In this document: positions 14,687 through 62,799 of the stretch, in pieces | Layout of the letters: every line of letters starts with the position of its first letter | How positions within the stretch are numbered: position 1 is the stretch's first letter | Assembly (NCBI RefSeq): GCF_030144855.1 | Contig: NC_082706.1 | Coordinates: 36,022,001-36,086,000, forward strand | DNA length: 64,000 bases | Reading direction: 5' to 3' | DNA from: Hypanus sabinus | Lineage: Eukaryota | Notes under the pieces: generated by a model | Databases searched by the model: none | The model's input: only the letters and a program-made list of their open reading frames with translations | Told to the model about the DNA's origin: nothing | Translations under genes and position numbers: made by a program

Positions 14687-14775
14687 GTGAGTGTGGCGGC
14701 CGGAGGCCGAACGCATCAGGTGGCGCAACGTCACCATCTGGCGGATGCGGGGACACGGACTCGGCAAGCCCCGCA

Positions 14776-32209: not shown

Positions 32210-32228
32210 AATAAAGATTTTAAATAAA
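32210..32228 (+). terminator. Likely TMED4 polyadenylation signals (about 1.6-kb 3' UTR)
   Basis: AATAAA at 32210-32215 and 32223-32228, followed by a U/GU-rich tract; no obvious TE between the stop codon and these signals. Confidence 0.7.
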
Positions 32229-35145: not shown

Positions 35146-35406
35146 TACCTCCCTTAACGCAGCTTACATCACTGGATGAAGTCAAAGATTCAAAGTACAT
35201 TATTATCAAAGTCTAGGTGCAGTATACAACCCTGAGATTTGTCTTCCCACAGACAGCTACGAAACAGAAAACCATGGAACCCGTTTGAAGAAAAACATAA
35301 AAACCAGCCCCATGCGCAAAAAAAGATCTTGCAAATGGCAACAAAAAGAGTAAAAAATACAATCTAATACACAAATTCAAAATAGTCGAGGTGTATTCAA
35401 TTCAGT

Positions 35407-35550
35407 GGCAAAACACACAAAATGCTGGAGAAACTCAGCAGGTCAGGCAGCATCTACGGAAATATGCACAGATCCTGCCTGATCTGAGTTCCTCCAGCAT
35501 TTTGTGTGTTTTGCATCTTTCCAGCATCTAAAGATTTTCTTGTGTTTGAT
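35407..35550. mobile_element. Penelope-derived hairpin insertion with 8-bp TSD AATTCAGT
   Basis: Near-perfect inverted arms at 35408-35514; aattcagt at 35399-35406 and 35551-35558. Confidence 0.8.
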
Positions 35551-36029
35551 AATTCAGTTCAGCTCAGCATTCGTTACCTGCAGGCCACCCCGATTCAAAA
35601 ATAGCAACAATAAAAGGAGGGACCAGAAATACATCATAATGTGAACTGCAGAGTCCAATCTACAAACCGCGTCGATTAAACCTTACCCAAGACCCAGAAC
35701 CCCGGTCTCTTCCTGTGCTGTACCATTACGTGTCCGTGATCAGAACCCACTGGATAGAGCGTTTCAGACCTCCTCGGCAGTGACCCTGTTCCTGCTGTGA
35801 GCTCCTCTCCTTGCCCAGCCTGAATCTGCCAGCATTTTATATTCACTGAAGGGGTGTTGGCTGAGCCGGTATTTTGTTGCCTGTCCCTGGTTGCCCTGGA
35901 GAAGGTGAGCTGGAGCTACTGCTGTCCAGGATTGTGGCCCAGTGACAGTGATAGAATTCAGAAGTAAAAGGAGTCAGCAGTCAGTCCAGGGTTCCCTTGT
36001 AGCCGTTTCCCTCTGCAATAAATATACCC

Positions 36030-36975
36030 ATAAGGCATAAGAGCAGAATTAGGCCATTCAGCCCATTGAGTCTGTTCCGCCATTCTATCATGGTTGCTTG
36101 TGGATTCCACTCGACCCCATACACCTGCCTTCTCGCCACATCCTTTAATGCCCTGACCGTTCAGGAAACGATCACCTTCTGCCCTAAATAGACACATGGA
36201 CTTGGCCTCCACCGCAGTCTGTCGCAGAGCATTCCACAGATTCACCACCCTCTGGCTAAAAAAATTCCTTCTTGCCTCTGTTCTAAAGGGTCGCCCCGCA
36301 ATTTTGAGGCTGTGCCCTCCAGTTCTGGGTTCTCCCATCATAGGAAACATCCCCTCCACATCCACCTTGTCTAGTCCTTACACCATTTGGTAGGTTTCAA
36401 TGACCCTGCGCTCTTATAAATTCCACTGAGTACAGGCCCAAAGCTGCCAACTGCTCCTCATATGTTAACCCCCTCATTCCTGGAATAATCCTCATGAACC
36501 TCCTCTGGACTCTTTCCAATGAAAACACATTCTTTCTGAGATACGGGGCCCAAAACTGTTGACAATACTCCAAGTTCAGCCTGACCAGTGTCTTATCTCA
36601 GCATTATCTCCTTGCTCTTATATTCTATTCCCCTTGAAATAAATGCCAACATTGCATCTGCCTTCTTTACCACAGACTCAACCTGTAAATGAACCTTCTG
36701 GGAGTCTTGCACAAGGACTCCCAAGTCCCTTTACACCTCTGATGTTTGAATCTTCTCCCCATTTAGATAATATTCTGCACTATTGCTCATTTTACCAAAA
36801 TGCATTATCATACATTTCCCAGTACTGTGTTCCATCCACCACTTTTTTGTCCATTCTTCCAATTTGTCTAAGTCCTACTGCAATTGCATTGCTTCTTCAG
36901 CAGTACCTACCCTTCTGCCTATCTTTGTATCATCCGCAAACTTTGTCACAAAGCCATTATCGAAATCACTGGCAA
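36030..36975 (-). mobile_element. CR1 LINE 3' portion
   Basis: KFADDTKIG and RNFFSQRVVNLWNAL motifs. Confidence 0.9.
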
Positions 36976-37004
36976 TGTGAAAAGCAGCAGTCCCAATACT
37001 GACC

Positions 37005-43839: not shown

Positions 43840-43900
43840 ATGGATTCAAGTTGTGGAATGTGGACGCTCCTCTGGTTCAGTTTGGCTCTTGTGCAGGAAG
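43840..43900 (+). CDS. ASTL: ASTL-like first coding exon (signal peptide)
   Basis: gtcATGG Kozak context, MDSSCGMWTLLWFSLALVQE G|gtagtg. An upstream ttttttttag acceptor at 43826 suggests a non-coding 5' exon. Confidence 0.7.
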
Positions 43901-43968
43901 GTAGTGGCTGTTTTAAATTTAGTTTGGGTTTTGTGTGTGTGTGCTTTACTCTCTCTGTTGAACAACAG

Positions 43969-44091
43969 TTTCTATTCCTGTTGTAACAATAGGTCAGAGT
44001 GAAGTCAAAGAGCCGGACAGCAAATCTCAGCTGGATGCTGCTCAAACCAAGACCATGCTTACAGAAGGTGCGATTGTCAGGATGAACCAGA
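43969..44091 (+). CDS. ASTL: ASTL-like exon 2 (propeptide); alternative in-frame acceptor at 43993
   Basis: caacag|TT TCT...CAG A|gtatgt, (V)SIPVVTIGQSEVKEPDSKSQLDAAQTKTMLTEGAIVRMNQ, phase 1/1. The I..MN segment is typical of astacin propeptides. Confidence 0.7.
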
Positions 44092-44319
44092 GTATGTTTC
44101 TGACCTTCCTTGTGTTCATTTCAGTGTGGATGGGGTGAGTTATTCTTGGCAACTGCTGTGGGAGTTCGTTTGAACCTTTTGCTAAAGACTTATCTGAAAG
44201 AAATCTCAGATAGCAACAGATGGACAGGTATTTCTGAAAGTCTTCTGTTGCCCTGGTAAAACTGACACCTTTTAGTGAAGCATGTGGCAGCGTTGTGTTA
44301 AATTGCTTCGCTGTGAATG

Positions 44320-45740
44320 TGAACATAGAATAGTACAGCACATTACAGGCCCTTCGGCCCACAATGTGGTGACGACCCTCAAACCCTGCCTCCCATATAA
44401 CCCCCCACCTTAAATTCCTCCATATACCTGTCTAGTAGTCTCTTAAACTTCACTAGTGTATCTGCCTCCACCACTGACTCAGGCAGTGCATTCCACGCAC
44501 CAACCACTCTCTGAGTGAAAAACCTTCCTCTAATATCCCCCTTGAACTTCCCTCCCCTTACCTTAAACCCATGTCCTCTTGTACTGGGCAGTGGTGCCCT
44601 GGGGAAGAGGCGCTGGCTGTCCACTCTGTCTATTCCTCTTAATATCTTGTACACCTCTATCATGTCTCCTCTTAACCTTCTTCTCTCCAAAGAGTAAAGT
44701 CCTAGCTCCCTTAATCTCTGATCATAATCCATAACCTCTAAACAAGGCAGTATCCTGGTAAATCTCCTCTGTACCCTTTTCAATACTTCCACATCCTTCC
44801 TATAGTGAGGTGACCAGAACTGGACACAGTACTCCAAGTGTGGCCTAACTAGAGTTTTATAGAGCTGCATCATTACATCGTGTCTCTTAAACTCTATCCC
44901 TCGACTTATGAAAGCTAACACCCCATAAACTTTCTTAACTACCCTATCTACCTGTGAGGCAACTTTCAGGGATTTGTGGACATGTACCCCCAGATCCCTC
45001 TGCTCCTCCACACTGCCAAGTATCCTGCCATTTACTTTGTACTCTGCCTTGGAGTTTGTCCTTCCAAAATGTACCACCTCACACTTCTCCAGGTTGATCT
45101 CCATCTGCCACTTCTCAGCCCACTTCTGCATCCTATCAATGTCTCTCTACAATCTTCGACAATCCTCTACACAATCTACAACACCACCAACCTTTGTCAT
45201 CTGCAAACTTGCCAACCCACCCTTCTACCCCAACATCCAGGTCGTTAATAAAAATCACAAAAAGTAGAGGTCCCAGAACCGATCCTTGTGGGACACCACT
45301 AGTCACAACCCTCCAATCTGAATGTACTCCCTCCACCACGACCCTCTGCCTTCCGCAGGCAAGCCAATTCTGAATCCACCTGGCCAAACTTCCCTGGATC
45401 CCATGCCTTCTGACTTTCTGAATAAGTCTACCATGCAGAACCTTGTCAAATGCCTTGCTAAAATCCACGTAGATCACATTCACTGCACTACCCTCATCTA
45501 TATGCCTGGTCACCTCCTCAAAGAACTCTATCAGGCTTGTGAGACATGATCTGCCCTTCACAAAGCCATGCTGACTGTCCCTGATCAGACCATGATTCTC
45601 CAAATGCTCATAGATCCTTTCTCTAAGAATCTTTTCCAACAGCTTTCCCACCACAGCCGTAAGGCTCACTGGTCTATAATTACCTGGACTATCCCTACTA
45701 CCTTTTTTGAACAAGGGGACAACACTCGCCTCCCTCCAAT
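44320..45740 (-). mobile_element. Young 5'-truncated CR1 LINE in ASTL intron 2
   Basis: Two long near-intact ORF2 segments (45136-45714, 44379-45131) separated by a single frameshift, followed by the CR1 3' end. Confidence 0.95.
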
Positions 45741-45789
45741 TGTTAAGAATCTTTTCGTTCTGAGTTTCCGAGGTTTCTTCTGCCTGCAG

Positions 45790-45851
45790 GTTTTCTTCAA
45801 CGTGGAATGCACGTGAGGAGCTTCTCCATCGAAGGAGATATTATCAAACCT
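45790..45851 (+). CDS. ASTL: ASTL-like exon 3 (aspartate-switch EGDI motif)
   Basis: ctgcag|GT...CCT|gtgagt, 62 bp, (S)[20 protein letters not shown]. Confidence 0.9.
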
Positions 45852-46281
45852 GTGAGTTTCTTCCCGTTCATTTTTCCTTTATATTTTGGATTTATTCTCG
45901 TGATGTTATATCGCACCCGTTAGGCTTGGCTGGTTGGGACTGATGTGGTTGTGTATTGCCGTATGGGGAGTACCCACAGCCAGGGTGGTGTACGGTTTCT
46001 GTGTGGACCGTCCTGATGTTGACAGAATCGAGGAAACCGCTTGCCTTTCATCCACCGTCTTTCCCATTGTCCACATCCCTGTTTGTGCCTGGAGAAGGGC
46101 ATGGTGCATTCAGTGACCAGTTCATACGCCAGGATGTATTGAACCAGTCCTTACTTCGATGCGTGGGTCTGAATACCTCCCCATGCCTGGGCTGAATCGG
46201 GACACAGATAGGAGGTCGACGGGGTGTAAACCTGTTATTTTTGAATGCCCCTGGTGACTGTAACTTGCTGCTTTCTCTCAG

Positions 46282-46375
46282 CTCCGGCAAAACATCGTAA
46301 TGTACCAAACCCAAACGTGGCCGAAATCCCCAGACGGCATGGTGAGGATTCCGTACAAGATCTCGCCGCAGTACG
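46282..46375 (+). CDS. ASTL: ASTL-like exon 4
   Basis: ctctcag|CTC...TAC G|gtaggt, 94 bp, LRQNIVMYQTQTWPKSPDGMVRIPYKISPQY. Confidence 0.92.
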
Positions 46376-46544
46376 GTAGGTGGGAATGGGGTTGGAAGCG
46401 GTGGTGGCAGCTTTAGATGTCCTGACTTTGGTGTGACTGCTCCTGAATTACCAGTAGACAGGTGTCATGGGACAGCTGAAGGCATGGCACCCTCACCTCA
46501 CTGTCTTTGGGGGGGAGAAACACTTCAAGTCATGGGGAGGGGAC

Positions 46545-46745
46545 ACGCAAAATGCTGGAGGCACTCAGTAGACTGGGCAGCATCTATATGAAACAGTGCA
46601 GTTGACGTTCCGGGCCGAAACCCCCTGCCGAAAGGGCCTGAAACGTCGACTGTACCTTCTTCCATAGGTGCTGCCTGGCCTGCTGAATTCCTCCAGCATT
46701 TTGTGTGTGTTGCTCAGATTTCCAGCATCTGCAGATTTTCTCTTT
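46545..46745. mobile_element. Penelope-derived foldback element
   Basis: Inverted arms caaaatgctggagg / ctccagcattttg around remnants including GAAACGTCGACTG (46640-46652). Confidence 0.75.
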
Positions 46746-47074
46746 GTGAGGTCATGGGGTCACAGATTTGTTTTATACTCGGCATTGTGCATACAGAGCT
46801 TCCTACTTGGACACCTAACGCACCAAAGGTTTGGAGATGTGACCAGACGAAATAGCGTAGAGTAACCCCTTCAAACCAGCGACTGCCAACAATCCCGATT
46901 TAACATTAACGTAATCACGGGGTGGCTAGCAATGGCTGACTAACCGACCCGGTACATCTTTGGACTGCACGTGGGAAAACCCAGGCATTCGGCAGGGAGG
47001 ACGTCCAGACGGCGCTGGAATTGAACTCCGGAGCGTCCTGGGATGGTGTCGTGCTAACCGTGGCCAGACATCCT

Positions 47075-50000
47075 TCTCTATCCATGTGACTCAAGGGCTC
47101 ATGTCGCCACCTTTGGACGGCCTTAATCTGGAGAAAAGACTTTCCTTGCACCTACTCTAGCCCCCCTCATGATTTTATAAACCCCCATGAGGTCATCCCT
47201 CGGTCTGCTATGCTACGAGGAATAAAGTTCTAGCATATCCGGCTCTCCTCCTAACCCAGGCTCTCTAGTCCTGGCAGCAACCTTCTAGATCGTTTTCCAG
47301 TTTCCCTACATCTTTCTAAACTATGCAGAGTACTCCATGTGCGTCCTCACCTCTAACTTACTCACTCTCCTGACTGAAGGCCAGTGAGCGAAACGCCCTT
47401 TTCTCCACCCTGTCTGCCTGTGATGCTGCTTTCAATAAACCAAGTGCCTCTGTTCCATCACACCCCTTCGTGCCCTGCCATTCATCGGCAAGTCCTAGGC
47501 TGGTCTGACACTCCAAAATGCATCACCTTGCACTTTATAGTAAAACACATTTGGCCTACCTTCCTAACTGAGCAAGATTCTCTAATCTAACCTAACTTAG
47601 TGTCCTTTCCAAACTCTGTTGATCAAGCTTTGTGCCTCTGATTCCAAACCTACTGATCACTTAACCAAAAATGGTCCCAACACCAACCCCTGTGAGACTA
47701 CTACTGGTCACCGGTCTCCATTCTAAGAAACCACCACCTGCTTCCTATCTCTGAGCTCATTTTGAACGAACTTAACTTGCTCCGCTTAGACTCCATGAGA
47801 CCTAACTTTCCAGACCAGCCTGCCGTGCGGCACTTGGTGAACCCGTGGAATTCTTTGCCACAGGCAGCTGTGGAGGTCAAGTCTTCATGCATGTTTAAGG
47901 CAGAGGTTGATAAATTCTTGATTGGTCAGGACATGAAGGGATACGGGGAGAAGGCAGGAGAGTGGGGCTGTGAGGGAAAATGGGTTAGCCATGATGAAAT
48001 GACGGAGCAGGCTTGATGGGCCAAATGGTCTAATTCTACTCCTTTAGGTCTTGTCAAAGGCCTTGCTAAACTCCACTGCTCTGCTCTCATCCATCCTTTT
48101 GGTTTCCTCTTCCAAAAGCTCTGAAAAGTTTGCCGAGTATGACTGCCCTCACACAAAGTCGTGCTGACTCTTCCTGATGAGACTCCATCCAAATGCTGGT
48201 AAATCCAACTCCTCAGAATTCCCTCCAGTAACTCAATATCCTTCTGAAACCATGGAACAACTTTTGCCAGCTTCCAGTCTTCGAGAAATCAATGCAGCGA
48301 ATCACCATGGGGGGGGGGGGGGGGGTTCTGTATTTTCTACTCTAGCCTCCCACAAAATGCAATTGGTCAAGAAATGGGGTTTCATCCACTTTAATGTGCT
48401 GCACGGCTATAAATACTTGGTCATATCAATGTCCTTCAAAACATCTTTATTTTTTTTGCCTTGTCTCTTGAACAACTATTATTTTCTCCTCAGGAAGCAC
48501 TGAAAATAAATATTTTTTAAAAAAATTCCCCTCTGGCTCAAGACATAGGCCTCTCTCCCTAGTCACCTTTTAATATAACTATAGTATCTCCTGGGATCTT
48601 CCTTGCCTGTCAGATCCATCAATGCCCTCTCATTTCCCTTAAATGTTTTCTTAATCTTTTTATATTTTCAAGGGGTTACACTGATCCCCAACTTCCTAAG
48701 CCCAATGTATGCTCCCTTCTTTTCTTGACCAGAATCTCAATATCTCTCATTAGGCAAGGGTTAAGCTTGCCAGGGTTATCAGTCACCCTACCAGGAACAT
48801 GTTGGTGTTAGACCCTAGCTCTCACACTCTTCTCCACTTGCCATGTTTATTTTCCTTTTGTCTTCAAACAGGTTCACCCGATCGATCTCTGAGAGCTCCT
48901 GCCCAGTTGCTCAAGAACCAGCCCTACTCCATTTGACCCGTCCTATTGTTTTTCATCATTATTATGAAACTAATAGAATTCTGCACACTAGAGCAAAATG
49001 CTCCTTGACTGCCCCCTCAGTCATTTGCCCTGCCTCGTTCTGTAAGGAGGTCTAGTGCTGCACCTTGAGGGGCCCTCAGATGTATACAATCCCTCGACAT
49101 ATTTCACAAATCCCACCCCGTCCACTGTATTGCATACCTCCATCATATTTCCTCTTAAAATCCACCACCAAATATCCAGTCACTCCTCATAACTGGATAT
49201 TCCCTCCTAGAAAGCACCTCGGTGAACCCCCTCTGCCACCTCTTCAATCCAGTGACATCCTTCCTACAGTGTGGTGACCCAAACTGCATGCCGTACTCTG
49301 AGTGAGGTCTGATCTCCTGGCAGTTGGGTAACTTTTTGGCTGCTTCTGTAACTATTATTTGACCATTCAAAGTTGTTATCCCTGAGCTGAGCTGAACCCC
49401 CCCCCCCCCACCAAACCAGGAGGACCATTGGACCCCTCTTAGTCTGGCCTCTACCCTTCGACCTGTTTGGCATGGGTGACCCTACCAAAAGTCAAAGCAC
49501 AAGCACTGACTCCAGCTCTCCATGAAGGTACAACCCTACAACAAGTTTGGAGGTGAGTTCTGACCAAATATGGTGTAGAAAGCTCCCTGTCCTAACTAAT
49601 GAGGCTAGTGTCACCATAACCATACTAAGTACATGTGCTGCCACCATCAAGGATCAAGTACATGAAGGTCCCTTTGTCCCTCAGACTTGTAATCCCAAAA
49701 TGCATCAGCTCACAATTAAACGCCATCTGCCACTCCTCATCCCACGTCACCCACGCATTGACATCACCCTGTAGCTTAAGACCACCCACCACTGTCAACG
49801 ACTCCCCCCAATCCTTGTGCTGTCGGTAAACTTGCAGATCACAGAAACATAAAAAACCTACAGCACAGCACAGGCCCTTCGGCCCACAATGCTGTGCTGA
49901 ACATGTATTTTAGAAATTACCTAGGGTTACCCATAGCCCTCTGTCTTTCTGAGACCTAAGAGTCTCTTAAAAGACCCCATTGTATCCACCTCCACCAACG

Positions 50001-50460
50001 TCGCCGGCAGCCCATTCCATGCTCTCATCACTCTCTGAGTTCTTTTTAAATTTACATCTCCTCTGTACCTACTTCCAAGCATCTTAAAACTGTGCCCTCT
50101 TGTGATAGCCATTTCAGCCCTGGGAAAAGCCTCTGACTATCCACATGATAAATGCCACTCATCGTCTTATACACCTCTATCAGGTCACCTCTCATCCTCC
50201 GTCACTCCAAGGAGAAAAGGCTGAGTTCACTCAACCTATTCTCATGAGGCATGCTCCCCAATCCAGGCAACAGCATCATAAATCTCCTCTGCACCCTTTC
50301 TATGGTTTCCACGTCCTCCACATAGTGAAGTGACCAGAACTGAGCACAGTACTCCAAGTGGGGTCTGACCAGGGTCCAATATAGCTGTAACATTACCTCT
50401 CGGCTCTTAAACTCAATCCTACGGTTGATGAAGGCCAATACACCATATGCCTTCCTAACC
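47075..50460 (-). mobile_element. Cluster of degenerate CR1 fragments (mostly minus; plus-strand 3' piece at about 47835-48050; younger piece at 49845-50460)
   Basis: LVRPHLEYCAQFWS, ERVQRRF and RGHSFK motifs. Confidence 0.75.
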
Positions 50461-50593
50461 AAAGATCATGCCTCCCTTGTCTGCAACACTCAAGTCCTTT
50501 CACAGCTGCATCCTGTTCCCATTTTCAATTTTTAATCTGCAGGATCTGTAGTATTTTTTTTAAAACCTACATGATACTTTCCCTTTCCTGCAG

Positions 50594-50711
50594 ACGAACA
50601 GACCCAGAGAGAGATCGGCCGAGGCTTCAAGGAGTTTGAAAGATTCACCTGCATCCGATTTGTACCTCACACTGACGAGGAGGACTTCATCTCTCTTCAG
50701 CCTGTTCCTGG
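50594..50711 (+). CDS. ASTL: ASTL-like exon 5
   Basis: cctgcag|AC...GG|gtacgt, 118 bp, (D)EQTQREIGRGFKEFERFTCIRFVPHTDEEDFISLQPVP(G). Confidence 0.95.
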
Positions 50712-51435
50712 GTACGTGCAGATTCTCCAGTGGTGAGGCAAGGCCAGTCTGACTTTTTTTTTGCCCTGGATACAGACTGATGCCCCACACTGGTCCCCTG
50801 TTACCACCAGGACTTGCTCCTAATACAGTAAAGTTTACGACTGATAGATGGGTGCAAGTGCCTAACCCTGGGGATACCATTCCTAATGAGGCACAGAATC
50901 TTCTACCATGTGGCAACGTTGTGGCTTAAATTAGTGGGCTAGTGCTTTGAGGTCTGCTTAATGAAAAAAGAACAGAAAAAGTGGGAGCAAGAACATACGT
51001 ACAGTCCCTTGTATCTGCCGTTCAATTCAACAATGACTGATTTCCTTTTTAATTCAGCACCACTTTCATCACTGACCCCATAACCGTGATCCTTGTTTTG
51101 AAAAAGTAAGTTGAAGCACCTCGAGTTTGAACTTTGCCTGGGAGGTTTAATTGAAGTGATTGGAGATGTGGTACTGGAAACCCTGACCTTTAAGCCGTTA
51201 AGTTGTTGGTGATATAAAACCCTCCTGGTTCACTGACGCCAGCAAAAGGAACCTGACTCCGGTTTGGACGAAGGGTGCTGGGCAGAATCCTGCTGGGCTC
51301 TGAACGGTAAATGCTGGCAGTGCCAGTGTTGCTTGGGTCCTGTGATCCCGAGATGTGGGTGTGCTCCGTCGCTCGAGTTCAGAATTCAGATTCCCTGTGG
51401 GCGCCAAGCTAACGGTGCTCGTCTCTGTCTCTCAG

Positions 51436-51617
51436 GTGCTCAGCGTCGGTGGGGCTGGTTGGCGGCGCGCAGCTCATCGCACTGAACCAGCGGTGCCTGC
51501 AGAAGGGGAAGGGCGTCATTGAGCACGAGTTAATGCACTCCCTGGGCTTCTGGCATGAACACACGAGGAGCGACCGAGATAAATACATCAAGATCGAGTG
51601 GAAGAATGTGTGGCCCG
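51436..51617 (+). CDS. ASTL: ASTL-like exon 6 (zinc-binding motif)
   Basis: ctctcag|G TGC...CCC G|gtaacg, 182 bp, [60 protein letters not shown]. Contains the astacin signature HExxHxxGFxHExxRxDRD. Confidence 0.97.
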
Positions 51618-52417
51618 GTAACGTCCTCTCCTCCAGATCTAGTTTGGTCCCTTCATCCCTGAACAACTCGAGCCCGTCTTGGATGGTCTCCTGTCTGTCT
51701 CTGGGCCTGGCAGAATTCAGCTTATTTTGGATAGTTGTGCTGTAAAGGGTTGTGGAGCATTCATGTAGGGACATGAGTTTGAATCCCAAGTGGAACTGAT
51801 CTTGATCAACAGTAATGAGAAAGTTGCTGTGAAAACCCACCTGGTTGTTTATGCTCTTGGGGATGAGGTATTCCGGCCACAGACTCACTGGTGTGGTTGA
51901 TTCCTAACTCCTGCCTTAGCTCAGCGATGCACTGTAAATGTCCATTGTAAGTTGTCCCACAATTAGGCCAGGGTTGTATCAGCGACTGCTGGGCCGACAG
52001 GCTCAAAGGGACAGAAGGGCCTCTCCTGCACTGTATCTCAATCAAAAAATAAAATATCTGGAACAAGCTGATAGAAGTGGATACAATTACAACAGTTAAA
52101 AGGCATTTGTGCAGATGAATGAACAGGAAGAGAGTAAATGAATACGGGACTGATGTAGGCAATGGAGATTAGAGTAGACAGGCACTATGGTCAGTATTGA
52201 CTAGGTGGGCTGAAGGGCCTTTTTCTGTGGAAATAGCTGTGTTATTTTTTTAAATATATTTTTAAAAACAACTTTTTCTTTCTTCAAACAAATTGAGAAC
52301 CAATTGCTTTGTGTTTTGGGGTGCCCCATGGTTTGTAAGGGAATAGTTTCATCACAAGACATCAGAAATATTCAAGTGTGCTGTGATTGGCCAGTTTCTG
52401 TCATACTTCCCTTTCAG

Positions 52418-52499
52418 GTTATGAACATAATTTTTTAAAGAAAAATACCAATAATTTGAAGTCCAAATATGACTATGGCTCCATCTTGCATTATAGCAG
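52418..52499 (+). CDS. ASTL: ASTL-like exon 7 (Met-turn region, here SILHY)
   Basis: tttcag|GT TAT...AGC AG|gtaaga, 82 bp, (G)YEHNFLKKNTNNLKSKYDYGSILHYS(R). Confidence 0.95.
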
Positions 52500-52799
52500 G
52501 TAAGAGTGATGATGGAGTGTTGTGACTCTTGTCTCTGTGTCTCTGAGGTTTCTAGATTTAAGTTTTCAGATCCTGCTTTGAATGTTTGAAGTTAATGATA
52601 ATTACCTGAAACTTGCCACCTCAGTTAAATCAACTTCGTTAAACTTTCATTTCCCTTCTCCTAAGTTACCTTGAGCCCTGTTTGCCAATCACTAGTAACC
52701 TCCCCATGTAATCTGTGGGGTCCTACAGGAGTAGGTGAAACAGTGGACCTCCTCTTCATGAACAAGGCAGGGCAAGTGACGGAGGGGCACTTTGAGACC

Positions 52800-54910
52800 A
52801 GTGACCATAATATTATTAGTGTAAAGTAGGTATGGAGAAAGAAAGGAAGGTCCATGGGCTAAAGTCCTAAACCAGGGCAGGGAGTTATCTGATGAGATCT
52901 TGCAGAGGTCATTTGGGTGGGATTGTTTGCTGGTAAAAGGACAATGGGCAAGTGGGAGGCTTTTTGAAAGTGTGATATCAAGAATCTGGGGCAGCTAGGG
53001 TACAGGGCAAGGCTGGCACATTTGGGGAACTGATGAGAGCTGTGGAGGCTCTGGTCAGGAAGAAGCATTCAAGAGGTTCAGGCAATTGGTGACAAGCAAA
53101 CCTTCAGTATAAGAATTGTAGGGGCAATCTTGAGGAAAATCCTGAGAGCAAGTAAGAGTAAATGAGATGGATCTGGCAGGCAGGGTTAAGGAAAATCACG
53201 AGGTTCTACAGGTGCATTAAGAGTTAAAGGATGTCTTCGGAGAGAGTATATCCCCTTTAAAATCAGTATTGCCATCTGTGTGTGTTGAACTTAATATTTC
53301 TCCAGTATTTTACTAAAGGAATTGGGGGGAAAAGGGTTATGACTTGGACCACACATACTTCCACAGAGGTCTTAAAGCACATTAAGATAGAACAGTACAG
53401 TATAGGTTCTTTAGCCCATGATGCACAAAACTAATTCCTTCTGTTCACACTCCACATTAATGTGCCTCTGAGTCCCTTAAACACTACCGCTGTATTGCGT
53501 TCCAAGTACGCACCATTCTGCATCTCTATAGAACAAAAAGTGCCCAGTACATCTCCTCATCACCTGCATGATCTCTGGGCTTTAGATATTTCAACCCTAG
53601 GGGGAATGGTTCTGGCTGTCTACTCTGTCAGAGCCTCTCATAATCTAATAAAGCTCTACTAGGTTTTCCTACAGCCTCCACTTCTGAAATTTGCCCAACC
53701 TCAGTACGTGCCCTCTAATTCAGACAGCATCCGAGTAAATCTGTTGTCTGCGTGGACTTGAGGGAGGCCCAAAGGTCCCATGTGGCAGGTGAGTCTGGAA
53801 GACAAAATCTGCAGATGCTGGAAATCCGAGCAACACTCACAAACACACACGGCAGCATCTATTGAAAAGATTAACAGCTGATGTTTTGGGCTGAGACCCT
53901 TCATCAGGACTTGTTCCTCTGGAAAGTTAGATTGCAAGGGGTCCAGGGACAGCTAGTTAACTGGATAAATAATTGGTTCGGCCGTAGGAAGCAGAGGGCA
54001 ATGGTCTCAAAATGGAGGCCAGTGACTAGTGGTGTGTGCCTCAGGATTGTGCTGGGGGCCTTTCTTATTTACATCTGAACGATTTGGATGTGACTGTACA
54101 TGGTTAAGTTTGTGAATGATACTAATGTAAGTGGCATCTTGGTAAAGAACATTATCAACAATTATAGCAGAACCTTGATTGGCTAGGCAAGTGGGCCAAA
54201 GATGGGCAAATGGCTTTCAACTGCAATAAATCTAGGGTGTTGCGTTTGGAAGTCAAACCCAGGGTGGTCTTGTACAGTGAATGGTCATTGGAACAGAAGG
54301 GCCTGGTACTGTATGGTTCATTGAATATTGCATTGCAGGTAAACAATGAGGTGAGGAGGTGTCAGGCACACTGGTCTTCATCAGTCAGGGCACTGAGTAT
54401 CATTTGGAGTTGGATCATTGTGTTGCAATTGTACAAGATGCTGACAGGGCTGCACTTGGAGAATAGTGCATAGTCACGCTGTTATAGGAACGACCTCACT
54501 AAACTGGAGAGGGGGCAGAGAGGCTCACAAGGACCCTACCAGGACTTGAGGGCCTGAGTTTATAGGGGAAGGCTGGGCAGGCTAGATCTTTATTCCTTAG
54601 TACATAGAAGATTGAGGTTGACCTTGAAGATGGGTAGATGGGGTGAATACAGTCTACTTCCCAGTGAAGCAGAACTAAAGGGCACTGGTTTAAGGTGAGA
54701 GCTGAAAGATTTAAAAGAGGTAACTTCACACAGAGAGGAGTGAACATGGAATCATGTCCCAGAGAAGGTGACTGAGGTAGGTACAATTATGACATTCAAA
54801 AGGCATGTAGACAGGTACTCGGATAGAAAAGGTTTGGGAGGATATGGGCCAAATGGAACTACCATTGTCAGCATGGACTAGATGGGCTGAAGGGTCAGTG
54901 CCTTTGTATG
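52800..54910 (+). mobile_element. Degenerate CR1 fragments with an inverted CR1 piece (about 53380-53740) and a Penelope-derived terminus (about 53800-53911)
   Basis: GVQGQLVNWINNW..RKQR, WRPVTSGV and WQMAFNCNK-type remnants. Confidence 0.7.
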
Positions 54911-55149
54911 ACTGATTGCAATGTAACCTTTTCAGCTTTGCTCTCTACTCTCTACTTCTAGTCTTTCATGTCTTTGAATGTACCTGCTGCTGAAGCAGGT
55001 CCTACTGTGTGATACTCGGTCAAGTTTTCTTTGGTCGAGCAAATCTGGGCATTCTGCTCTTAAAAAATAGTAGCTGTATAAATGCAAGCTTTGTTCTTGT
55101 CAAATTAGGCAGGGCTTTGATTTGTATTGAACTTCTCGTCCAATTACAG

Positions 55150-55310
55150 GACAGCATTTTCCAGGAATGGACAGCCAACCCTGACGCCACTGGTGGATAC
55201 AGACGCTGTGATTGGCCAACGAGTCTGCTTGAGTGAGATGGACTTGCTGAAGGTTAACCGGCTCTACAACTGCACGGCATATCTCAAGGATGAGGCCGAT
55301 ATGGTGAAAT
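55150..55310 (+). CDS. ASTL: ASTL-like exon 8 (end of the catalytic domain); read-through of the donor would stop at 55339
   Basis: ttacag|G ACA...AAA T|gtaagg, 161 bp, TAFSRNGQPTLTPLVDTDAVIGQRVCLSEMDLLKVNRLYNCTAYLKDEADMVK. Confidence 0.93.
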
Positions 55311-56218
55311 GTAAGGGAAAGAGGAACCAGCGGTTTTAAGAGAATGTGTGACTCCTGATAAAACAAACTAAAGTTAGTCACTTCATACCAGCAGTGCCTG
55401 ATGGTAGCAGATTTCAAATTTATTTGGGTTTCATCAGTGTTACCCCTGCTTCTGATGTGCCCCATAACGAGCAAACCCCTGGCTTTAAGGGGTGGGCGTT
55501 TTAACCATGAGCAGCCTCCTGGCGGTTTGTCTGACGGTGGGAGGAGGGCAGGAAAGAATGAATCTGTGGTGGTTCAGAGTACAAGTCAGATTACTTGGAC
55601 ATCAGGCAAGGATGAGCCCTCCTCTACGTGCATCTCGGAAACAGTCCACGAGGAAAACACTACTTTTGTTGGGTAGCTCTGTGGTTGGAAAGGGGGAGAG
55701 GTGGGGAAAGTGTCTCAAACTCAAGGGGGAGTGCAGCAGAACCCTACCCACCCGTAAACTATCTGGGGGTGTACTTGAGAAGCTGGGACCTGCAGACCAG
55801 AGCTGAGGGGTGATGGGATTACAGAGACAAATTGTCTTGGAAGAAGTGGGGTTTGGACTAGGACAAGCTTGAGCAGTTGGTGTTCAAAGGGATCTGGGTG
55901 TCCATGTTCAATAGGTACATTTAATTTCAGAAACATATACATCCTGGAATTCTTTATCTTCACCAACATCCATGAAAACAGGGGAGTGCCTCAAGAATGA
56001 ATGGCAGCTAAATGTTAGAACCCCAAAATCCCCCTCCCTGCACAAGCAGTGAGTATAAATTATTGAAGATTAACACAAATGGCAAATGGTACGATGGCCT
56101 TTACTCAGGACTGGAATTCAAGAGGTGTCCTACTGCAGCTACATTGGGAACTGGTGAGACCCATCTGGTCCCCCAATGAAGGAAGAAGTCACTGCAGTCA
56201 GAGCACAGGAGGTTAACC

Positions 56219-56674: not shown

Positions 56675-57186
56675 CAGGTTGATTCCTAGCATAGCGATCT
56701 CTCACAAAAGCAGAGATTGAACAATCTGGGTTTGTATTACCTAAATCTCGAGGGTGGAGATTATTTCATTGGAACATACAAACTGCTTGGTAGGTAGGAG
56801 CTGGACTTTGCCCGGCTGGAGTGTCCAAAACTGGGATTGCAAAAAGGTGTCTACATGCTGACGTGTGAAAAGACGTTTCTTCACGTATTGAGATGGAATT
56901 CTCTATCCGTGAGGGTATAATTGTGTTGACCCATTCATGAAGGTGACCAGTAGATTCTTGGCCATTAAAAGGATCCGGTGTTATTGGAGGAGTCACTAAG
57001 GAAAAGGAACTGCCATGATCTTCATGGGTGGGGAACAGATATGAAGGGCAGAATGGCCTTCTATATCATCTGTTTCCAACATCAGCCCACGTGAGGGGTG
57101 GGGAGACTCTTTCTGCTCTGATCCCGGAAACCTGAGGGGTCACTTAAGTTTGTTCTCACCTCTCCCTCCCCCCTTGGGGCATCCAG

Positions 57187-57719
57187 TGGAGAATGGTGCC
57201 GCTCTGAGACCCGGAGAACCAAGAAGGCAGTCGGGCCGAAATCTTTCCGGGACGCCCATGCTGGAAGCGCAGGAGTGGTGGGGGCTTCTTGTGGGGACGG
57301 GTCGGCGGGGATCCAGTCCACCGCCGCTCCGGAGGTGGGAATGCGCCTGTTCGCACACAGGGCAGCCACTGAGGAGCCGGTGCCCGGCGTTCCTGGAGCT
57401 GCCCACCATCGCCCGCGACCCCGAGCCGAGGTTTCTCTCCTGGGCTGCCCCCACGGAGCGCAAACCCGGTCCGCCGGTCTCCCGGCTCGGCGCATCGGGG
57501 CCAAACTCCACCGCGGGCGCACGGTTCCTGCCCGGGGGGCTGCCGGAGCCGCCACTCACCACGAGTTGTCCTCCGCCCTGCGGCGGGGCCACTGTCCGCC
57601 TCCGCCGGTTCTGCTGGCTCGACACCACGGACACCTCCCCGGCCACCATCCTCCATCCCAGGGGCTCGCTTCGGGCACCCAGGTGGGGATGGACGGGTGG
57701 AGACGCCGACTCCTCGTGA
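57187..57719 (+). CDS. ASTL: Candidate ASTL-like exon 9: GC-rich, Pro-rich C-terminal extension ending in TGA
   Basis: ccctcccccttggggcatccag|TG GAG is phase-1 compatible with exon 8 and in frame with ORF 57150-57719, giving a 1416-nt CDS (471 aa). Composition suggests internal frameshifts relative to the ancestral frame. Confidence 0.55.
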
Positions 57720-57734
57720 ACCAACATCGCCTCC

Positions 57735-58045
57735 GATTGACATGACCCCAGCCTCTGACGTGGCCATGCCCCCGGTAAGGCTGCACCCTGTGACTTGCCC
57801 CCACCCTCTGACCTCCGACCAGGCCATGCCCATTGAAGAGGCCCCGACCTCTAACCTAACCCCACCCAACAAGCAGCTCGCACTCACAGACACCATCCCA
57901 TCCGACTAGGCACTTCCCTCCAAACAGGCTCCATCCACTGACCGCACCCTGGCCTTCAACCTGACCGCGGGAACAGACCTTGCCCCTCTCTCTGACCAGG
58001 TCCCTCCCTCTGGTCAGTCCCACTTGTCTGACAAAGTCTCTGCAG
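57735..58045 (+). pseudogene. Decayed 18-nt/hexapeptide repeat, mucin-like stalk coding remnant
   Basis: SDVAMP, SDQAMP, SNLTPP, SD*ALP, SKQAPS, TDRTLA, TDLAPL, SDQVPP, SGQSHL and SDKVSA in one frame; TAG at 57907-57909. Confidence 0.65.
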
Positions 58046-58289
58046 AGTACCTCCTGGGTTGCAGGCCCTCGGTGAGGAACCCCTCCAAGGGTTGTCCCCC
58101 TTGAGTGAAAACCTCCCACCCAGTAATCTTCCCCCTCAGCCAGGCCCTAGACCCCCAGCTGCTCCTTCAGGGATGCCCACTGGGTCGGAGAACCCTGCGA
58201 GAGCCTCCCCTCGGAGGGTACCAGTGGGACCGGGCCGAAAGCGGATCACAGCAAAGGGCAGTACAAGGACCGAGGAGTTGAGGGGAAAT

Positions 58290-58520
58290 GTCAGAATCAG
58301 ATTTATTATTATTGATGAATTTTATTGTTTTGCTGCAGCAGTACGATGTACAATGTAAAAAAAACACCTAAAAAATAAACAGTGCAGAAGGAATATTGTG
58401 GTGGTGTTCATGGACCATTCAGAAATCTGATGGCAGAGGGCAAGAAGCTTCTGGTGGTAATGAGAAGATGGTAACATGTCCCGGCTGGTGAGGGTCCTTA
58501 GTGATGGATGCTGCCTTCCT
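58290..58520 (-). mobile_element. Rex1/Babar 3' fragment interrupting the decayed ASTL 3' exon
   Basis: tcagaatcagatttattat tail and the ggtgttcatggaccattcagaaatctgatggcagaggg block shared with the other copies. Confidence 0.75.
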
Positions 58521-59349
58521 GAAGCTGTCTTTCCCGGCGGGGAGGGCTGCACCTGTGTCCGCAACCCTCTGCAGCCTCTTTCAGCGCTGCAAATTGGAGC
58601 CTTTGCTGCTGGGGGTGTTGAAGCAATGGGAGGAGAAAACAGCTGGAACTCTGAGCCAGCGCCAGTGAGAGCAGCAGTGATGGCTGTACGTGTAGACAAA
58701 TCACCTTAACTCCACTGATTGGAATCAAATCTAATGGAACACCGCCAGGCCGAGATATACACTTTATTTCTCTGTCCACTGACGCTGCCTGATGTTCTGA
58801 GTACTTCCTGTTTAGTTTTAGAGTAAAATCGTGGTCCGGTTTTGATTTTTTTTTTCAGTTCTAGTGAATTCAGTTGTGACTCTTGGAAAGGAGACTGATA
58901 AGTTCATGAAGTGAGGACTGGCTGGACTCTTTCACAAACTGAAACCACTTACTGCTGTAAGCTTCCTGTGATTCTCTAGTTTTGCCAAACACTGAGGTTG
59001 TGTAGAAATACTGCATCTTTGTATTTCAAGCCTGTGTTCTTCAGAATTGAGTTGATGGTTCACAAGGCTACACACCTTGGCAGGATCTAGAGGGCTGGCA
59101 TAGACTTGATGGGCTGAATGGTTGCTTGTGTGTTGTAAGAATTGTGATTGTAACCTGACTATGGGCTAGGCTGGAGCCAGCTTAAGCTGCTGGGCAGAGC
59201 AGTGTATCTGAATCATTGTGAAGAAATGCTTTCTGTGCTCGTGGGATTGACTTGCAGCTGTGCAGAGAGAGTGGGCTGCTTTCTCTGGTCCACCGGGGGA
59301 AGGTCACATTAATGTGGCTGGTCAACCTGCTGACATAGACTGGTGATCT

Positions 59350-59830
59350 GGATGGAGGAACAACACCTCATATTCTGTCTGGGTAGTCAAACCTGATGGC
59401 ATCAACATCTTGTCTAGCTTCCAGTAATTACCCCTCTCTGTCTGACTCCCTTTTTATCTGTTACCCCATTTCCTATTCTGGTTACCCACTCACCCCTTCT
59501 TGTCCTCTACCATTAGACCCGCCCATCACCTCCCTCTGATTCGCCATCTTCCTTCTCTCCTTGTCTGCTGTTCTCTCCTATCAGAATCCTCCTCTTTCCA
59601 TTTACCAGCTCCTAACTTCTCACATCATTCCCCCCCCACCCATCCACCTTCCCCTCACCTGTAACCTGTCAGCTTGTACCCCCCCCCCCTTTCCCCACCT
59701 TCTCATTCTGGCTTCTGCCCCCTTCCTTTCCAGTCCTGATGAAAAGTCTTGGCCCGGAATGTTAACCGTTTACTTGCCTTCACTGACGCTGCCTGAATTG
59801 TGTGTTTCTCCGGATTTCCAACATCGACGG
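59350..59830 (+). mobile_element. Penelope-like element 3' portion with a hammerhead-like terminus
   Basis: EEQHLIFCLGS.PDGINI, a pyrimidine tract, then cagtcCTGATGA at 59731-59742. Confidence 0.8.
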
Positions 59831-60192
59831 AATGTGGTGACCCGGAGGAAGTTGTTCAAGTGCGATTCTGGCAAACGGGGATTTGAAATTCAGTTAAGTA
59901 AAGTTGGGATCACTGCTTGTGACAGTGATTAAAATCTGTCTGGTTTATGTACAATAGGTCCACAGCCAATGGTGGAAACGCTCAGCAAGCCAAGCAGTGT
60001 CAGTGGAGAGAGAACCAATGCGAGCATTTCATTATCAAAGACCTTCATAGATCATCGAACAGTCCAGCACTGGACAGGCCATTCAACGTGCGATGGTGCA
60101 CCAGTCTTTATTTAGATACGGTGTGGAGTAGGGCCCTTGAGCCCCACGGCCCGAAACCCACCAACTTAACCCTGGCCTAATCATGGGACAGC

Positions 60193-60420
60193 CGGCTGAT
60201 GGCATAGTGGCATCAGTGCTGGACTTCAGGGCGAGAGATCGAATCCAGCCGGCTCCCGTTAAGAGCTGGTGATCTCTTTAATAAAAAGAAACCTCACCTG
60301 GCAGAAGTCAATGGCAAACCACTGCTGTAACTTGCCTAGTACGCGATTTCCCCAGTGCGCCAGAGCGGCGTGAAAGGGGGTCGTCCACTACCTGGAAATA
60401 ATTCAGGATGCGACCTACCT
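60193..60420 (+). mobile_element. tRNA-derived SINE; second copy at about 61210-61410
   Basis: A box TGGCATAGTGG and B-box-like GATCGAATCC / GTTTGAATCC; the two copies share their head sequence. Confidence 0.7.
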
Positions 60421-60732
60421 TACCTTAATCATGGGACAATTCATGATGACCGATTAACCTGAGGGAGGAAACCAGAGCACCCGGGGAAACACGCCCTTTC
60501 CTGGGGGGAAGGTACAAGCGTGCTTACAGAGGATGCTGGAATTGAACTTTGAACTGCGACATCCCAAGCTGTGCTACAGTGGCACCCCATCTTGATGACA
60601 ATTTACAGTCAAGGGTTTTGAAGAAAAGTCTTCCGCTTGGTGTGTAATCTCTCCCTCCACAGATACTGCCTGGGCAGCTGAGCGTTTCCAATGTTGTCTG
60701 CTCATTGCAGCAACTATTCCCTCCGTTTCCAG

Positions 60733-60879
60733 GGTTACCGAGTCAATTCCGATGGATGAGCTGACCAGGCCGTCGCTTGTGCCTGGAGGCGTCATATCCT
60801 CAGCGGATTAGGGAGAAGGCTGTGCTCGCCTGCCCAGTACTGACCGGGCAGAGGGGGCTGTCGTTCTGGTACCACGTGG
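60733..60879 (+). pseudogene. Decayed MAM-domain exon (central part)
   Basis: gtttccag|GG...GTG G|gtgagt, 147 bp, phase 1/1. Reads LPSQFRWMS*PGRRLCLEASYPQRIREKAVLACPVLTGQRGLSFWYHV, resembling the MAM pattern G.YLYLEAS...GDKARL.SP.L...CLSFWYHM. In-frame TGA at 60762-60764. Confidence 0.75.
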
Positions 60880-61119
60880 GTGAGTGGTGAGAGGCAAACA
60901 GTGTGCATCTGGTTCCAGGCTTCAGTGCGAGGAAGGTGGCCAGTGACGAAGGATCTGATGGTGAGCAGAGATCCAGCTTGAGGTATTGTGTGCGTGTGCG
61001 TGTGTGCATGTGAGTCCTCTGTGTGTGTTTTAGCTCTTCGTGTGCTCTGCGGTGTGTGTGAGTCAGTGGAATCTACCGGACACAGATACAGAGAGGGACT
61101 CTTTCCTATAGGATTGCTC

Positions 61120-62240
61120 AAAGTTCAAAGTGAATTTATTATCAAAGAATGTATGTTATCACATATTTTACCTTGAGGTGCATTTTCTTGTAGCCATTTA
61201 CAAGAAAGCTGGCTGGTGGTGTAGTGGCATCAGCACTGGACTGGGGCGAGTGGTCCTGGGTTTGAATCCAGCTGGCTCCTTGTATGCTTTCCATCTATGC
61301 TGGGTGGCGCATTGAGGTAGTGACTTGGCCTCGTTTTTTTTTAAACAGACAAAATGCTAAAGAAATGGCAAGGTTGCCACCCAATGTGCCACAAGGCATG
61401 GAGAGAAGCAACAATTTGCAAGAAAAATAAAGACATACAATTTTCATAAATTGTACCATAAACAAAGACTGACAAACGACCAATGTGCAAAAGAAGACAA
61501 CTAAATTTTAAAAAAGTAATCCTGAGATCGAGTTGTAAAGAGACCTTGAAAGTGAGCCTGTGGGTTGTGGAATCAACTCAGAGTTGTCCACACTGGTTCA
61601 GGAGTCTGGTGGTTGTAGGGTAATAACTAATCCTGAACCTGGTGGTGTAGGTCTTAAAGTAGAGAGAAAAGAGCATGGCAGGGTTCCTTCGTGGGCACTG
61701 CTTTCTCATGGTGATGTACTCGTTGGCGAAGTGGGCTTTTCCTGTGACGGACTGGGCTGTATCCGCCATTTTCTGTCGTCCTCTCTGTTCCTGGGCTTTG
61801 GTGTTTCCACACCGGCCGTGATGCAACCAGTTAGTTTACTCTCCACTGTGCACCTACAGAAGCTGGTCAGTTTTTGGTGACGCGCTGAATCTGTGCAAAA
61901 CCTCAAAGAAAGTAGAGATGCTTTCTCCCCTTTGTGAAGGGACTTGTGCTAGTCCTAAGACAGATCCTCCGCTAGGTTAACACCAAGGAATTTAATGCTA
62001 CTGACCCTCTCCTGCTCTGATTCCCTAATGAGATCTCTGCTGTTTCGACCTGGACCTCTTTGGTTGTGCTGATGTTGAGTGGGAAATTGTTGTGATGCCA
62101 GTTAACCCGATCTTCAATCTCTCTATGTGCCAATTCGTCTCAACCTTTGACTCTGCCAACAACCGTGGGGCTGTCGACAAACTTCCTTAAGTACTGGAGC
62201 TGTACCTAGCCACACAATCAAAGTTATAAAGTGAGTAAAA
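61120..62240 (-). mobile_element. Rex1/Babar LINE 3' portion with a nested SINE
   Basis: LTSFCRCTVESKLTGCITA and TTRFRISYYPTTTRLLNQ; aagttcaaag tail. Confidence 0.8.
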
Positions 62241-62475
62241 CTTGAGCAGGGCACATTTACATAGTGCTTTTAACTTTGCATCTCCCATAGCTTCTAAAGT
62301 GCTCTGACCAATGTAATATGGAAAACTTGGGGTTAACCCCGTGCTGAAGACCTTGCCTTTACCTTGCTGATCCGGGGAATGAAGGGAACTTGCCAGCCTT
62401 TCACAATGATGTTTTACAACCTTTCATAGCCAAGAGTGAGGGAGACAGCCTTCTGCAGCCCAGTGGTGAATTCAG

Positions 62476-62622
62476 CAGCCGCTGACAGATTGGATGTGAC
62501 ACTTCACGTTGGAAACTGAAGTACGAGAGCTCCTCATACTGGCACAAGCCGTTGCTGGGAACCGGGGTCACAAGTGGCTAAAGGCCAAGGTGGACCTGTC
62601 CCCCAGTGGACAGGCATATTGA
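62476..62622 (+). pseudogene. Decayed MAM-domain exon (C-terminal part)
   Basis: ADRLDVTL then, after a frameshift, AVAGNRGHKWLKAKVDLSPSGQAY*, resembling MAM L.VY...GNQG..W..A.V.L. Followed by ATAAGT, a probable dead GTAAGT donor. Confidence 0.7.
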
Positions 62623-62799
62623 ATAAGTCAAGATCTGACCAATCAGAAAGAGCTGAAGGAAGAACTGGGCTGTGGGATCTGTCTCCACTGTCCTGTCTGC
62701 TCTTTCACTTTCACACTGTGCAATTTCCACAGCCGGTGAAACCTTGACAACTATCCTGAGGTGCATATTTGTACTGCCCGTGCAATCATTGAGCTTATA

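Follow-up and report, generated by a model that had tools for sequence, protein, structure and literature searches.

Relics of stalk and MAM exons behind an intact astacin-type protease gene in the stingray Hypanus sabinus

The subject of this article is an astacin-type protease gene in a stretch of 64,000 nucleotides from the stingray Hypanus sabinus (NCBI RefSeq assembly GCF_030144855.1, contig NC_082706.1, positions 36,022,001 to 36,086,000 of the forward strand), hereafter referred to as the window. Comparison with related genomes makes it very probable that this stingray gene has lost exons 9-12, which encoded a stalk and a MAM domain, while its eight 5' exons continue to code for a complete secreted zinc protease. 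In the proposed course of events, the ancestral gene would have comprised 12 exons specifying a signal peptide, a propeptide, an astacin domain, a mucin-like stalk and a MAM domain. The 3' exons 9-12 would then have died, exon 9 through the loss of its acceptor, donor and frame and the gain of a nonsense codon, exon 10 through the loss of its pyrimidine tract, a structural cysteine and five codons, and exon 11 through the loss of its acceptor, donor and frame. The mRNA would end by read-through of the exon-8 donor into intron 8, yielding a protease-only product of 295 amino acids (aa), as annotated in Hemitrygon. An ancestor of this composition, with a later loss of the MAM domain and retention of the protease in this lineage, had been proposed in an initial annotation of the window made from its letters alone, and the proposal is borne out by shark, chimaera, sawfish, lamprey, paddlefish, reptile and marsupial relatives, with the relics aligning exon for exon.

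The ancestral architecture is preserved in the closest relatives of the protein. When the catalytic exon was compared by phmmer with 1.84 billion representative proteins, the nearest full-length proteins proved to be those of Heterodontus francisci (1343-1344 aa), Scyliorhinus canicula (495 aa) and Callorhinchus milii (1162-1272 aa), in which Pfam places Astacin at the N-terminus and MAM (PF00629, E values of 1e-28 to 1e-39) at the C-terminus, with 800-900 Ser/Thr/Pro-rich residues between the two in the long forms. The catalytic exon of the window is 78-82% identical to those of Heterodontus XP_067879279 (1344 aa), Callorhinchus XP_007905686 and Scyliorhinus XP_038641587 ("meprin A subunit beta-like"), an NCBI name for the shark proteins that appears to reflect only the presence of MAM. 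The same Astacin-stalk-MAM plan is found in lamprey and paddlefish relatives, as well as in proteins named ASTL by NCBI from Pogona (1853-1856 aa), Anolis, Podarcis, Mauremys (approximately 2790 aa), Alligator and the marsupial Sminthopsis (1915 aa); ASTL of the dog family contains the astacin domain only. The Heterodontus gene is intact, with 12 coding exons, of which exon 9 (2.7 kb) encodes the whole stalk and approximately the first 50 MAM residues and exons 10, 11 and 12 (about 135, 135 and 150 nucleotides) encode the remainder of the domain. The chondrichthyan long forms share this 12-exon plan and its splice phases with the window, and the relics align to their exons 9-11; they keep the stalk and an intact MAM domain, whereas the copies in the window are dead and its product is the protease only. 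In the sawfish Pristis, exons 9-11 are intact, free of stops and 71-77% identical to those of Heterodontus, and exon 12 was not located there. A comparison with orthologues had been suggested at the outset, and the MAM domain proves to be kept in sharks, chimaera and, over exons 9-11, sawfish.

The first of the decayed pieces is the relic of exon 9. A Ser/Thr/Pro stalk exon broken by frameshifts and a TAG had been described behind the catalytic exons, and this region is indeed homologous to exon 9 of shark, sawfish and manta. Its acceptor has changed from AG to GG at 57176-57177 in both dasyatids, namely the window and Hemitrygon, and is still AG in Heterodontus and Mobula. A 7-bp deletion after 57201 is also found in both dasyatids, and a change of AAG to TAG at 57907-57909 is common to the window, Hemitrygon and Mobula. 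Of the 16 indels that separate exon 9 of the window from that of Hemitrygon, 13 have lengths not divisible by three. The decayed MAM start forms the last 120 or so nucleotides of the exon (58160-58277), where Mobula and Hemitrygon have a 7-bp deletion in common, against a gap of 20 bp in the window. These three rays have a degraded CDFEHGLCxW motif and have all lost the second cysteine of CDFEHGLC, and the donor GT (58278-58279) has become CT in Hemitrygon and TT in the other two. When shark C-termini were compared by tblastn with 57-64 kb, 58229-58276 matched as TGPKADHSKGQYKDRG, with 69% identity to Heterodontus. A segment further downstream that had been taken for a possible MAM start (58588-58650, plus strand) belongs to intron 9 and matches neither any MAM query nor the family model described below; in the orthologues the MAM start lies inside exon 9.

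Several other characteristics of this region were observed. Tandem Repeats Finder detected no DNA tandem repeats in the stalk relic, and the hexapeptide periodicity is visible at the peptide level only, against the APPTDQ repeats of Pristis. Indels are far denser in the stalk relic than in the flanking introns, with 16 events in 1.1 kb between species about 6% diverged, which in this GC-rich relic suggests slippage-prone low-complexity DNA. Directly after the dead exon-9 donor, an A/T-rich stretch containing AATAAA (58290-58450) is present, as it is in Hemitrygon and Mobula; Pristis has no equivalent of that length, and part of the stretch (58406-58449) recurs at 4640-4683.

The relic of exon 10 still has an open reading frame. 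An exon running from LCLEAS to FWYHV had been read as a phase-1/1 MAM exon of 147 bp with one in-frame TGA; its identity and phases stand, while its length is 111 bp, and the TGA (60762-60764) lies upstream of the conserved acceptor and is hence intronic, leaving exon 10 free of stops. By tblastn, 60768-60878 (GRRLCLEASYPQ...FWYHV) is 57% identical to the Heterodontus MAM domain (E value of 2e-9). Two deletions are private to the window, one of 18 bp that removed the pyrimidine tract just upstream of the exon and one of 15 bp in frame after 60872 that removed five of its codons. The conserved cysteine of GQKCL has become glycine at 60855-60857 in the window and Hemitrygon. The ratio of nonsynonymous to synonymous substitution rates (dN/dS) of exon 10 among the three rays is 0.6-2, and between Pristis and Heterodontus dN is 0.11 with dS saturated. 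In Mobula hypostoma, predicted isoform X3 (26915-27037, 31726-31770) runs from exon 8 to the exon-10 MAM relic and on to a novel terminal exon (VDSTAEHNSTGRSP, then a stop) just upstream of the exon-12 relic, and isoform X5 runs from exon 8 directly to that terminal exon.

Exon 11 is broken at both ends. The peptide GNRGHKWLKAKVDL, initially described as having a frameshift, a stop and a dead donor, is the relic of this exon, with a 7-bp frameshifting deletion after 62554 and a change of the donor from GT to AT (62623-62624), both common to the window and Hemitrygon, and a terminal CGA-to-TGA change at 62620-62622 that is private to the window. A further private deletion of 62 bp took the acceptor and the first 16 nucleotides. 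Hemitrygon has its own acceptor change from AG to CG and a TAA, and Mobula carries different indels. The tblastn matches lie in two different frames, 62516-62548 as LKYESSSYWHK (73% identical) and 62548-62619 as AVAGNRGHKWLKAKVDLSPSGQAY (42-54%). The segment LDVTLHV at 62490-62510 (62475-62516, DRLDVTLHVGN against GSLNVFL) was also considered as part of MAM and was rejected, being intron that is conserved in Hemitrygon and Mobula. Exon 12 falls outside the window; by alignment it would lie about 230 bp past its end in Hemitrygon, where it is broken too, and a weak tblastn match to the exon 11/12 junction is found at 62723-62788 (E value of 22). Two copies of a tRNA-like short interspersed nuclear element, 73% identical to each other, occupy 60187-60256 in intron 9 and 61204-61279 in intron 10. 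A tail motif (...gacgctgcctga...) occurs at 58780, 59785 and 63670 and matches many other places in the window.

Detection of the MAM pieces depended on the model employed. Pfam hmmscan and PDB phmmer searches with the isolated relic peptides gave no MAM match because the pieces are too short and too decayed, and even the Mobula equivalent of exon 10 reaches 23.6 bits in Pfam MAM, below the cut-off of 26.4. A family hidden Markov model (HMM) was therefore compared, built from nine MAM domains of the astacin-stalk-MAM family with no ray among them and run with all filters off against 3229 six-frame pieces of the window. Exon 10 ranked first (E value of 1.5e-10, 38 bits, HMM positions 56-92), exon 11 second (0.039, 11 bits, positions 117-138) and the exon-9 part fourth (5, 4 bits, positions 35-55). 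The search for MAM that the initial annotation called for is thus blank with Pfam on isolated pieces and positive with the family model, which places exons 10 and 11 at the head of the ranking. The placement of the pieces on one strand and in the right order behind the catalytic exons, as originally described, is upheld by colinear tblastn matches to the orthologues' exons and by the order along the HMM. The family-HMM scores for the exon-9 MAM part, exon 10 and exon 11 are 65, 72 and 48 in Pristis; no match, 64 and 21 in Mobula, where exon 12 scores 17 bits; 9.5, 58 and 8 in Hemitrygon; and 4, 38 and 11 in the window, a series described as falling from Pristis through Mobula and Hemitrygon to the window. 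The PF00629 domain of approximately 160 aa is represented in the window by fragments only, with no continuous open frame having usable splice sites.

The lesions are nested according to phylogeny, some being shared with Mobula, more with Hemitrygon, and some being private to the window. Hemitrygon akajei ASTL X1 (295 aa) and the ASTL-like proteins of Mobula hypostoma and M. birostris are orthologues whose genes have the same relic exons and shared lesions, to which the window adds private deletions of 18, 15, 62 and 20 bp and the CGA-to-TGA change; Mobula, unlike the window, still has the acceptor of exon 9 and the cysteine of exon 10, and some of its predicted isoforms enter the relics. Since Mobula, too, has the TAG at 57907, the dead donor of exon 9 and the 7-bp deletion at the beginning of MAM, the stalk-MAM part was dead before the dasyatid-mobulid split. 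The loss is consequently not in progress, as had been supposed, these three disabling lesions placing it before that split. The relics have evolved about neutrally since the onset of decay, and they are an ancient remnant that the slow pace of sequence evolution in elasmobranchs has left legible.

In front of the relics stands an intact gene, the exon assembly of which was guided by the Hemitrygon akajei protein. All eight exons have canonical GT/AG splice sites and contain no stops. The product matches Hemitrygon akajei ASTL isoform X1 ("astacin-like metalloendopeptidase isoform X1") at 272 of 295 residues (92% identity), and the whole locus, introns included, is 91-94% identical to Hemitrygon akajei DNA. 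The spliced coding sequence begins with a predicted signal peptide, MDSSCGMWTLLWFSLALVQEG, judged by eye only, followed by a propeptide with the aspartate switch EGD. Exon 6 is the zinc-binding exon, in which the site HELMHSLGFWHEHTRSDRD fits HExxHxxGFxHExxRxDR(D); PF01400 is recognised in the 92%-identical Hemitrygon and Mobula proteins with E values of 1e-46 to 1e-58. The mature domain has the four canonical cysteines (FTC, PGC, RCL, NCT) and one private to it (RVCLSE). The Met-turn reads SILHY (52480-52494, exon 7; leucine codon 52486-52488), so that methionine is replaced by leucine and the zinc-ligand tyrosine is retained. This change is found in all chondrichthyan sequences of the gene family compared (12 species including the window), and for that reason it is not a sign of decay in the stingray; reptile and marsupial ASTL retain the methionine.

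The predicted product terminates nine residues past the old exon-8 donor (...MVKCKGKRNQRF, then a stop), and the position of this donor is conserved (AAAC/GTAAGG in Heterodontus, AAAT/GTAAGG in the window). The annotated proteins of Hemitrygon (KCKGKRNQWL, then a stop) and Narcine (SKTPRNQCF, then a stop) end by this read-through as well, and the Amblyraja protein (281 aa, ...AKREAAGKPCL, then a stop) also stops soon after the catalytic domain, without stalk or MAM. The batoid models returned were all short and contained Astacin only, at 243-295 aa in Hemitrygon, 293 in Narcine, 280-306 in Pristis, 281 in Amblyraja and 369-517 in Mobula. From the annotation of these relatives, we infer that the mRNA now ends via read-through of the exon-8 donor into intron 8. 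A read-through stop lies at the same position in Heterodontus, and a read-through model in Chiloscyllium has no stop there; as a low-confidence idea, the protease-only isoform might be older than the loss of stalk and MAM. For the protease exons, dN/dS values lie at 0.37-0.45 within the group formed by the window, Hemitrygon and Mobula and at 0.08-0.13 within that of Pristis, Heterodontus and Amblyraja, indicating that the protease is probably still under purifying selection, though relaxed approximately four-fold relative to lineages that keep MAM. The per-exon comparison of rates proposed initially separates exon 10, with its higher values, from the protease exons of the same rays. The features are listed in Table 1.

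Table 1. Positions in the window of the protease gene, the relic exons and the upstream neighbour
Feature	Position	Strand	Remarks
Short-form astacin gene, intact	43840-55339	+	8 coding exons, 295-aa product
Coding exons 1-8	43840-43900, 43993-44091, 45790-45851, 46282-46375, 50594-50711, 51436-51617, 52418-52499, 55150-55339	+	
Read-through C-terminus	55311-55339	+	Old exon-8 donor GTAAGG (55311-55316) translated: CKGKRNQRF and TAA (55337-55339)
Exon-9 relic (Ser/Thr/Pro stalk and first part of MAM)	57178-58277	+	Alignments with Hemitrygon, Mobula, Pristis and Heterodontus
Exon-10 relic (MAM, phase 1/1)	60769-60879	+	111 bp; frame open, acceptor CAG and donor GTGAGT kept
Exon-11 relic (MAM)	62514-62622	+	Alignments, tblastn, family HMM
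Exon 1 of p24-family TMED9/4-like gene	14527-14865	+	Human TMED9 chains, E value of 2e-11; weak Pfam EMP24_GP25L

Alternative explanations can be categorized by what they make of the 3' region. The strongest of them, although still improbable, is gene fission followed by death, in which stalk and MAM would already have formed an independent downstream gene in batoids and that gene then decayed in stingrays. The annotation of Pristis pectinata (29333-38123) gives such a picture, with a 306-aa astacin gene followed 1.2 kb on by a separate 559-aa MAM-containing gene, the exon-9 frame staying open across a proline-rich stretch of low complexity for about 190 nucleotides before the ancestral acceptor, and protease-only short products are annotated in every batoid examined. 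However, a single protein joins protease and MAM in the models of Heterodontus, Scyliorhinus, Callorhinchus, lamprey, lizard and marsupial, and exon 8 is still joined to exon 9 or 10 in the models for Mobula, with the exon-8 donor and the Mobula and Heterodontus exon-9 acceptors conserved and phase-compatible. Split annotations are also found in the sharks Cetorhinus and Rhincodon, where they look like pipeline artefacts, and the Pristis split could be either a mis-split model or a real fission.

It is less credible still, and indeed very unlikely, that the 3' region continues to code, either through a cryptic acceptor (CAG/T, 57184-57186) opening a new frame for a tail of 177 aa rich in Pro, Gly and Arg, or because exon 10 is included, so that the tail would have been remodelled and not lost. 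The frame behind the cryptic acceptor is open for 177 codons in the window, but it stops after 83 codons in Hemitrygon, the 13 frame-breaking indels listed above disrupt it, and long chance open reading frames are expected in such a GC-rich region. The open frame and intact donor of exon 10, together with its inclusion in Mobula X3, favour the second variant, against which stand the deleted pyrimidine tract in the window and the fact that none of the four Hemitrygon isoforms enters exon 9. That the peptides resemble MAM by chance, or that the lesions are errors of assembly, as the blank Pfam and PDB searches might suggest, has a negligible probability given the family-HMM result for exon 10, the colinearity of the pieces with the orthologues' exons and the nucleotide synteny with the Hemitrygon and Mobula relics, and the recurrence of identical lesions in three independent assemblies rules out sequencing or assembly error, which the initial annotation had asked to be excluded, and thereby effectively refutes it.

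The decay of exons 9-12 behind a functional protease is accordingly the preferred explanation, although certain observations weigh against it. In each of the three rays the frame of exon 10 is open and its donor good, and the exon is spliced into predicted Mobula isoform X3, so some residual use of it may persist; the 3' end of the mRNA was inferred from the annotation of relatives, and no canonical AATAAA follows soon after the stop codon of the 295-aa coding sequence; and the stalk-MAM part of Pristis is annotated as a separate gene.

The affiliation of the catalytic domain was also analysed. It scores 192 and 177 bits against hatching enzymes and 139 bits against meprin beta, and its best tetrapod matches are alligator and turtle ASTL, above teleost hatching enzymes. 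C6astacins have six conserved cysteines, with an extra pair at the mature N-terminus (PMC8812170); no such pair is present in the N-terminal segment of the window's mature domain. Tetrapod ASTL, the nearest named family, has four conserved cysteines, not six, as in the ray. In a maximum-likelihood tree, from which meprins were left out and in which the window row carried a splice error affecting its branch length, a chondrichthyan clade (98/98), a clade of paddlefish and tetrapod ASTL (96/87) and a separate clade of teleost hatching enzymes (95/100) were recovered. Marsupial and eutherian ASTL group with the sauropsid long forms (98/96) inside the paddlefish-tetrapod clade, and the join between the chondrichthyan and ASTL clades is not resolved.

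Regarding the genomic neighbourhood, the Pogona ASTL gene, which encodes MAM, has as its neighbours a Rhodanese+DSPc phosphatase gene on one side and an intronless seven-transmembrane gene on the other, matching DUSP2 and ADRA2B, which adjoin human ASTL. The Sminthopsis gene, likewise encoding MAM, is flanked downstream by an intronless gene of 437 aa. Whereas lizard ASTL thus lies between genes resembling DUSP and intronless G-protein-coupled receptor genes, the ray gene has a TMED9/4-like gene in front of it, and no other upstream neighbour was recognised in the window. Neighbours resembling DUSP2 or ADRA2B were not found around the ray gene in the nearest flanks, to which the examination extended, nor was an open reading frame of receptor size within 10 kb downstream in Mobula. 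The ray gene belongs to the vertebrate astacin-stalk-MAM (ASTL-type) family, for which NCBI uses the name ASTL; whether it corresponds one-to-one to mammalian ovastacin is unproven, given the difference in neighbouring genes. The designation "ovastacin-type" is accordingly apt for the nearest named family and goes too far if it implies orthology.

Comparison with known astacins clarifies what has been lost. Meprins alpha and beta combine astacin with MAM, like the ancestral ray form, but their MAM domain directly follows the catalytic domain and precedes TRAF/MATH, EGF and a transmembrane anchor, whereas the orthologues of the ray protein have a stalk of 800-900 aa in between and nothing recognised by Pfam after MAM. 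The combination had been regarded as a meprin feature, a view contradicted by ASTL-annotated proteins of lizards, turtles, alligators and marsupials that carry MAM. Non-eutherian ASTL (1915 aa in Sminthopsis, 1856 aa in Pogona, about 2790 aa in Mauremys) thus comprises astacin, a long stalk and MAM, and eutherian ovastacin (approximately 430-450 aa) and these rays are both without MAM. Eutherian ovastacin possesses a C-terminal region of about 150 aa (PMC12281054), which is disordered, whereas the ray product keeps nine residues. The postulated convergence on the mammalian architecture therefore extends to the absence of MAM and not to the tail, the ray having lost its stalk as well. A 2025 review denies orthology between ovastacin and non-mammalian astl proteins (PMC12281054), a statement with which lizard and marsupial ASTL proteins that carry MAM and have the expected intronless neighbour are at odds.

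Within batoids, the intact exons 9-11 of Pristis make more than one loss of stalk and MAM likely. The 10 kb downstream of the Amblyraja gene yielded no MAM relic. For Narcine bancroftii, a marginal peptide resembling a MAM start, GGQFCCDFDNEACAW (30973-31065; CDFDNEACAW, E value of 0.05), was found, which runs into a stop 8.4 kb downstream of the astacin gene, and it may be the relic of an independent loss in electric rays. A broader proposal, which is tentative and on balance doubtful, is that stalk and MAM constitute an optional tether discarded repeatedly and independently in eutherians, myliobatiform rays and probably electric rays and skates, each time via a pre-existing exon-8 read-through isoform and perhaps following changes in egg envelope or reproductive mode.

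Proteins are known to lose domains when terminal exons decay, and public annotation already includes both the gene family and the short ray proteins; in a literature search, neither the relic exons nor the MAM domain of non-eutherian ASTL turned up in any paper. The finding, which is moderately interesting, is neither as recent nor as singular as the initial annotation held, and it parallels the eutherian loss. It provides a dated example, documented lesion by lesion, of a multidomain secreted protease becoming a single-domain one, in which terminal exons are abandoned, splice sites die, neutral decay sets in and the catalytic part comes under relaxed selection. Given the astacin-stalk-MAM plan of ASTL outside eutherians and the intronless neighbour of the lizard and marsupial genes, the MAM-less form of mouse and human is then itself a product of parallel loss, which bears on the origin of the eutherian C-terminal region and on how the enzyme is held at the egg surface. 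If the proposal of repeated loss is true, mammalian ovastacin would be a truncated descendant of an ancient astacin-mucin-MAM protein and not the mammalian novelty described in PMC12281054.

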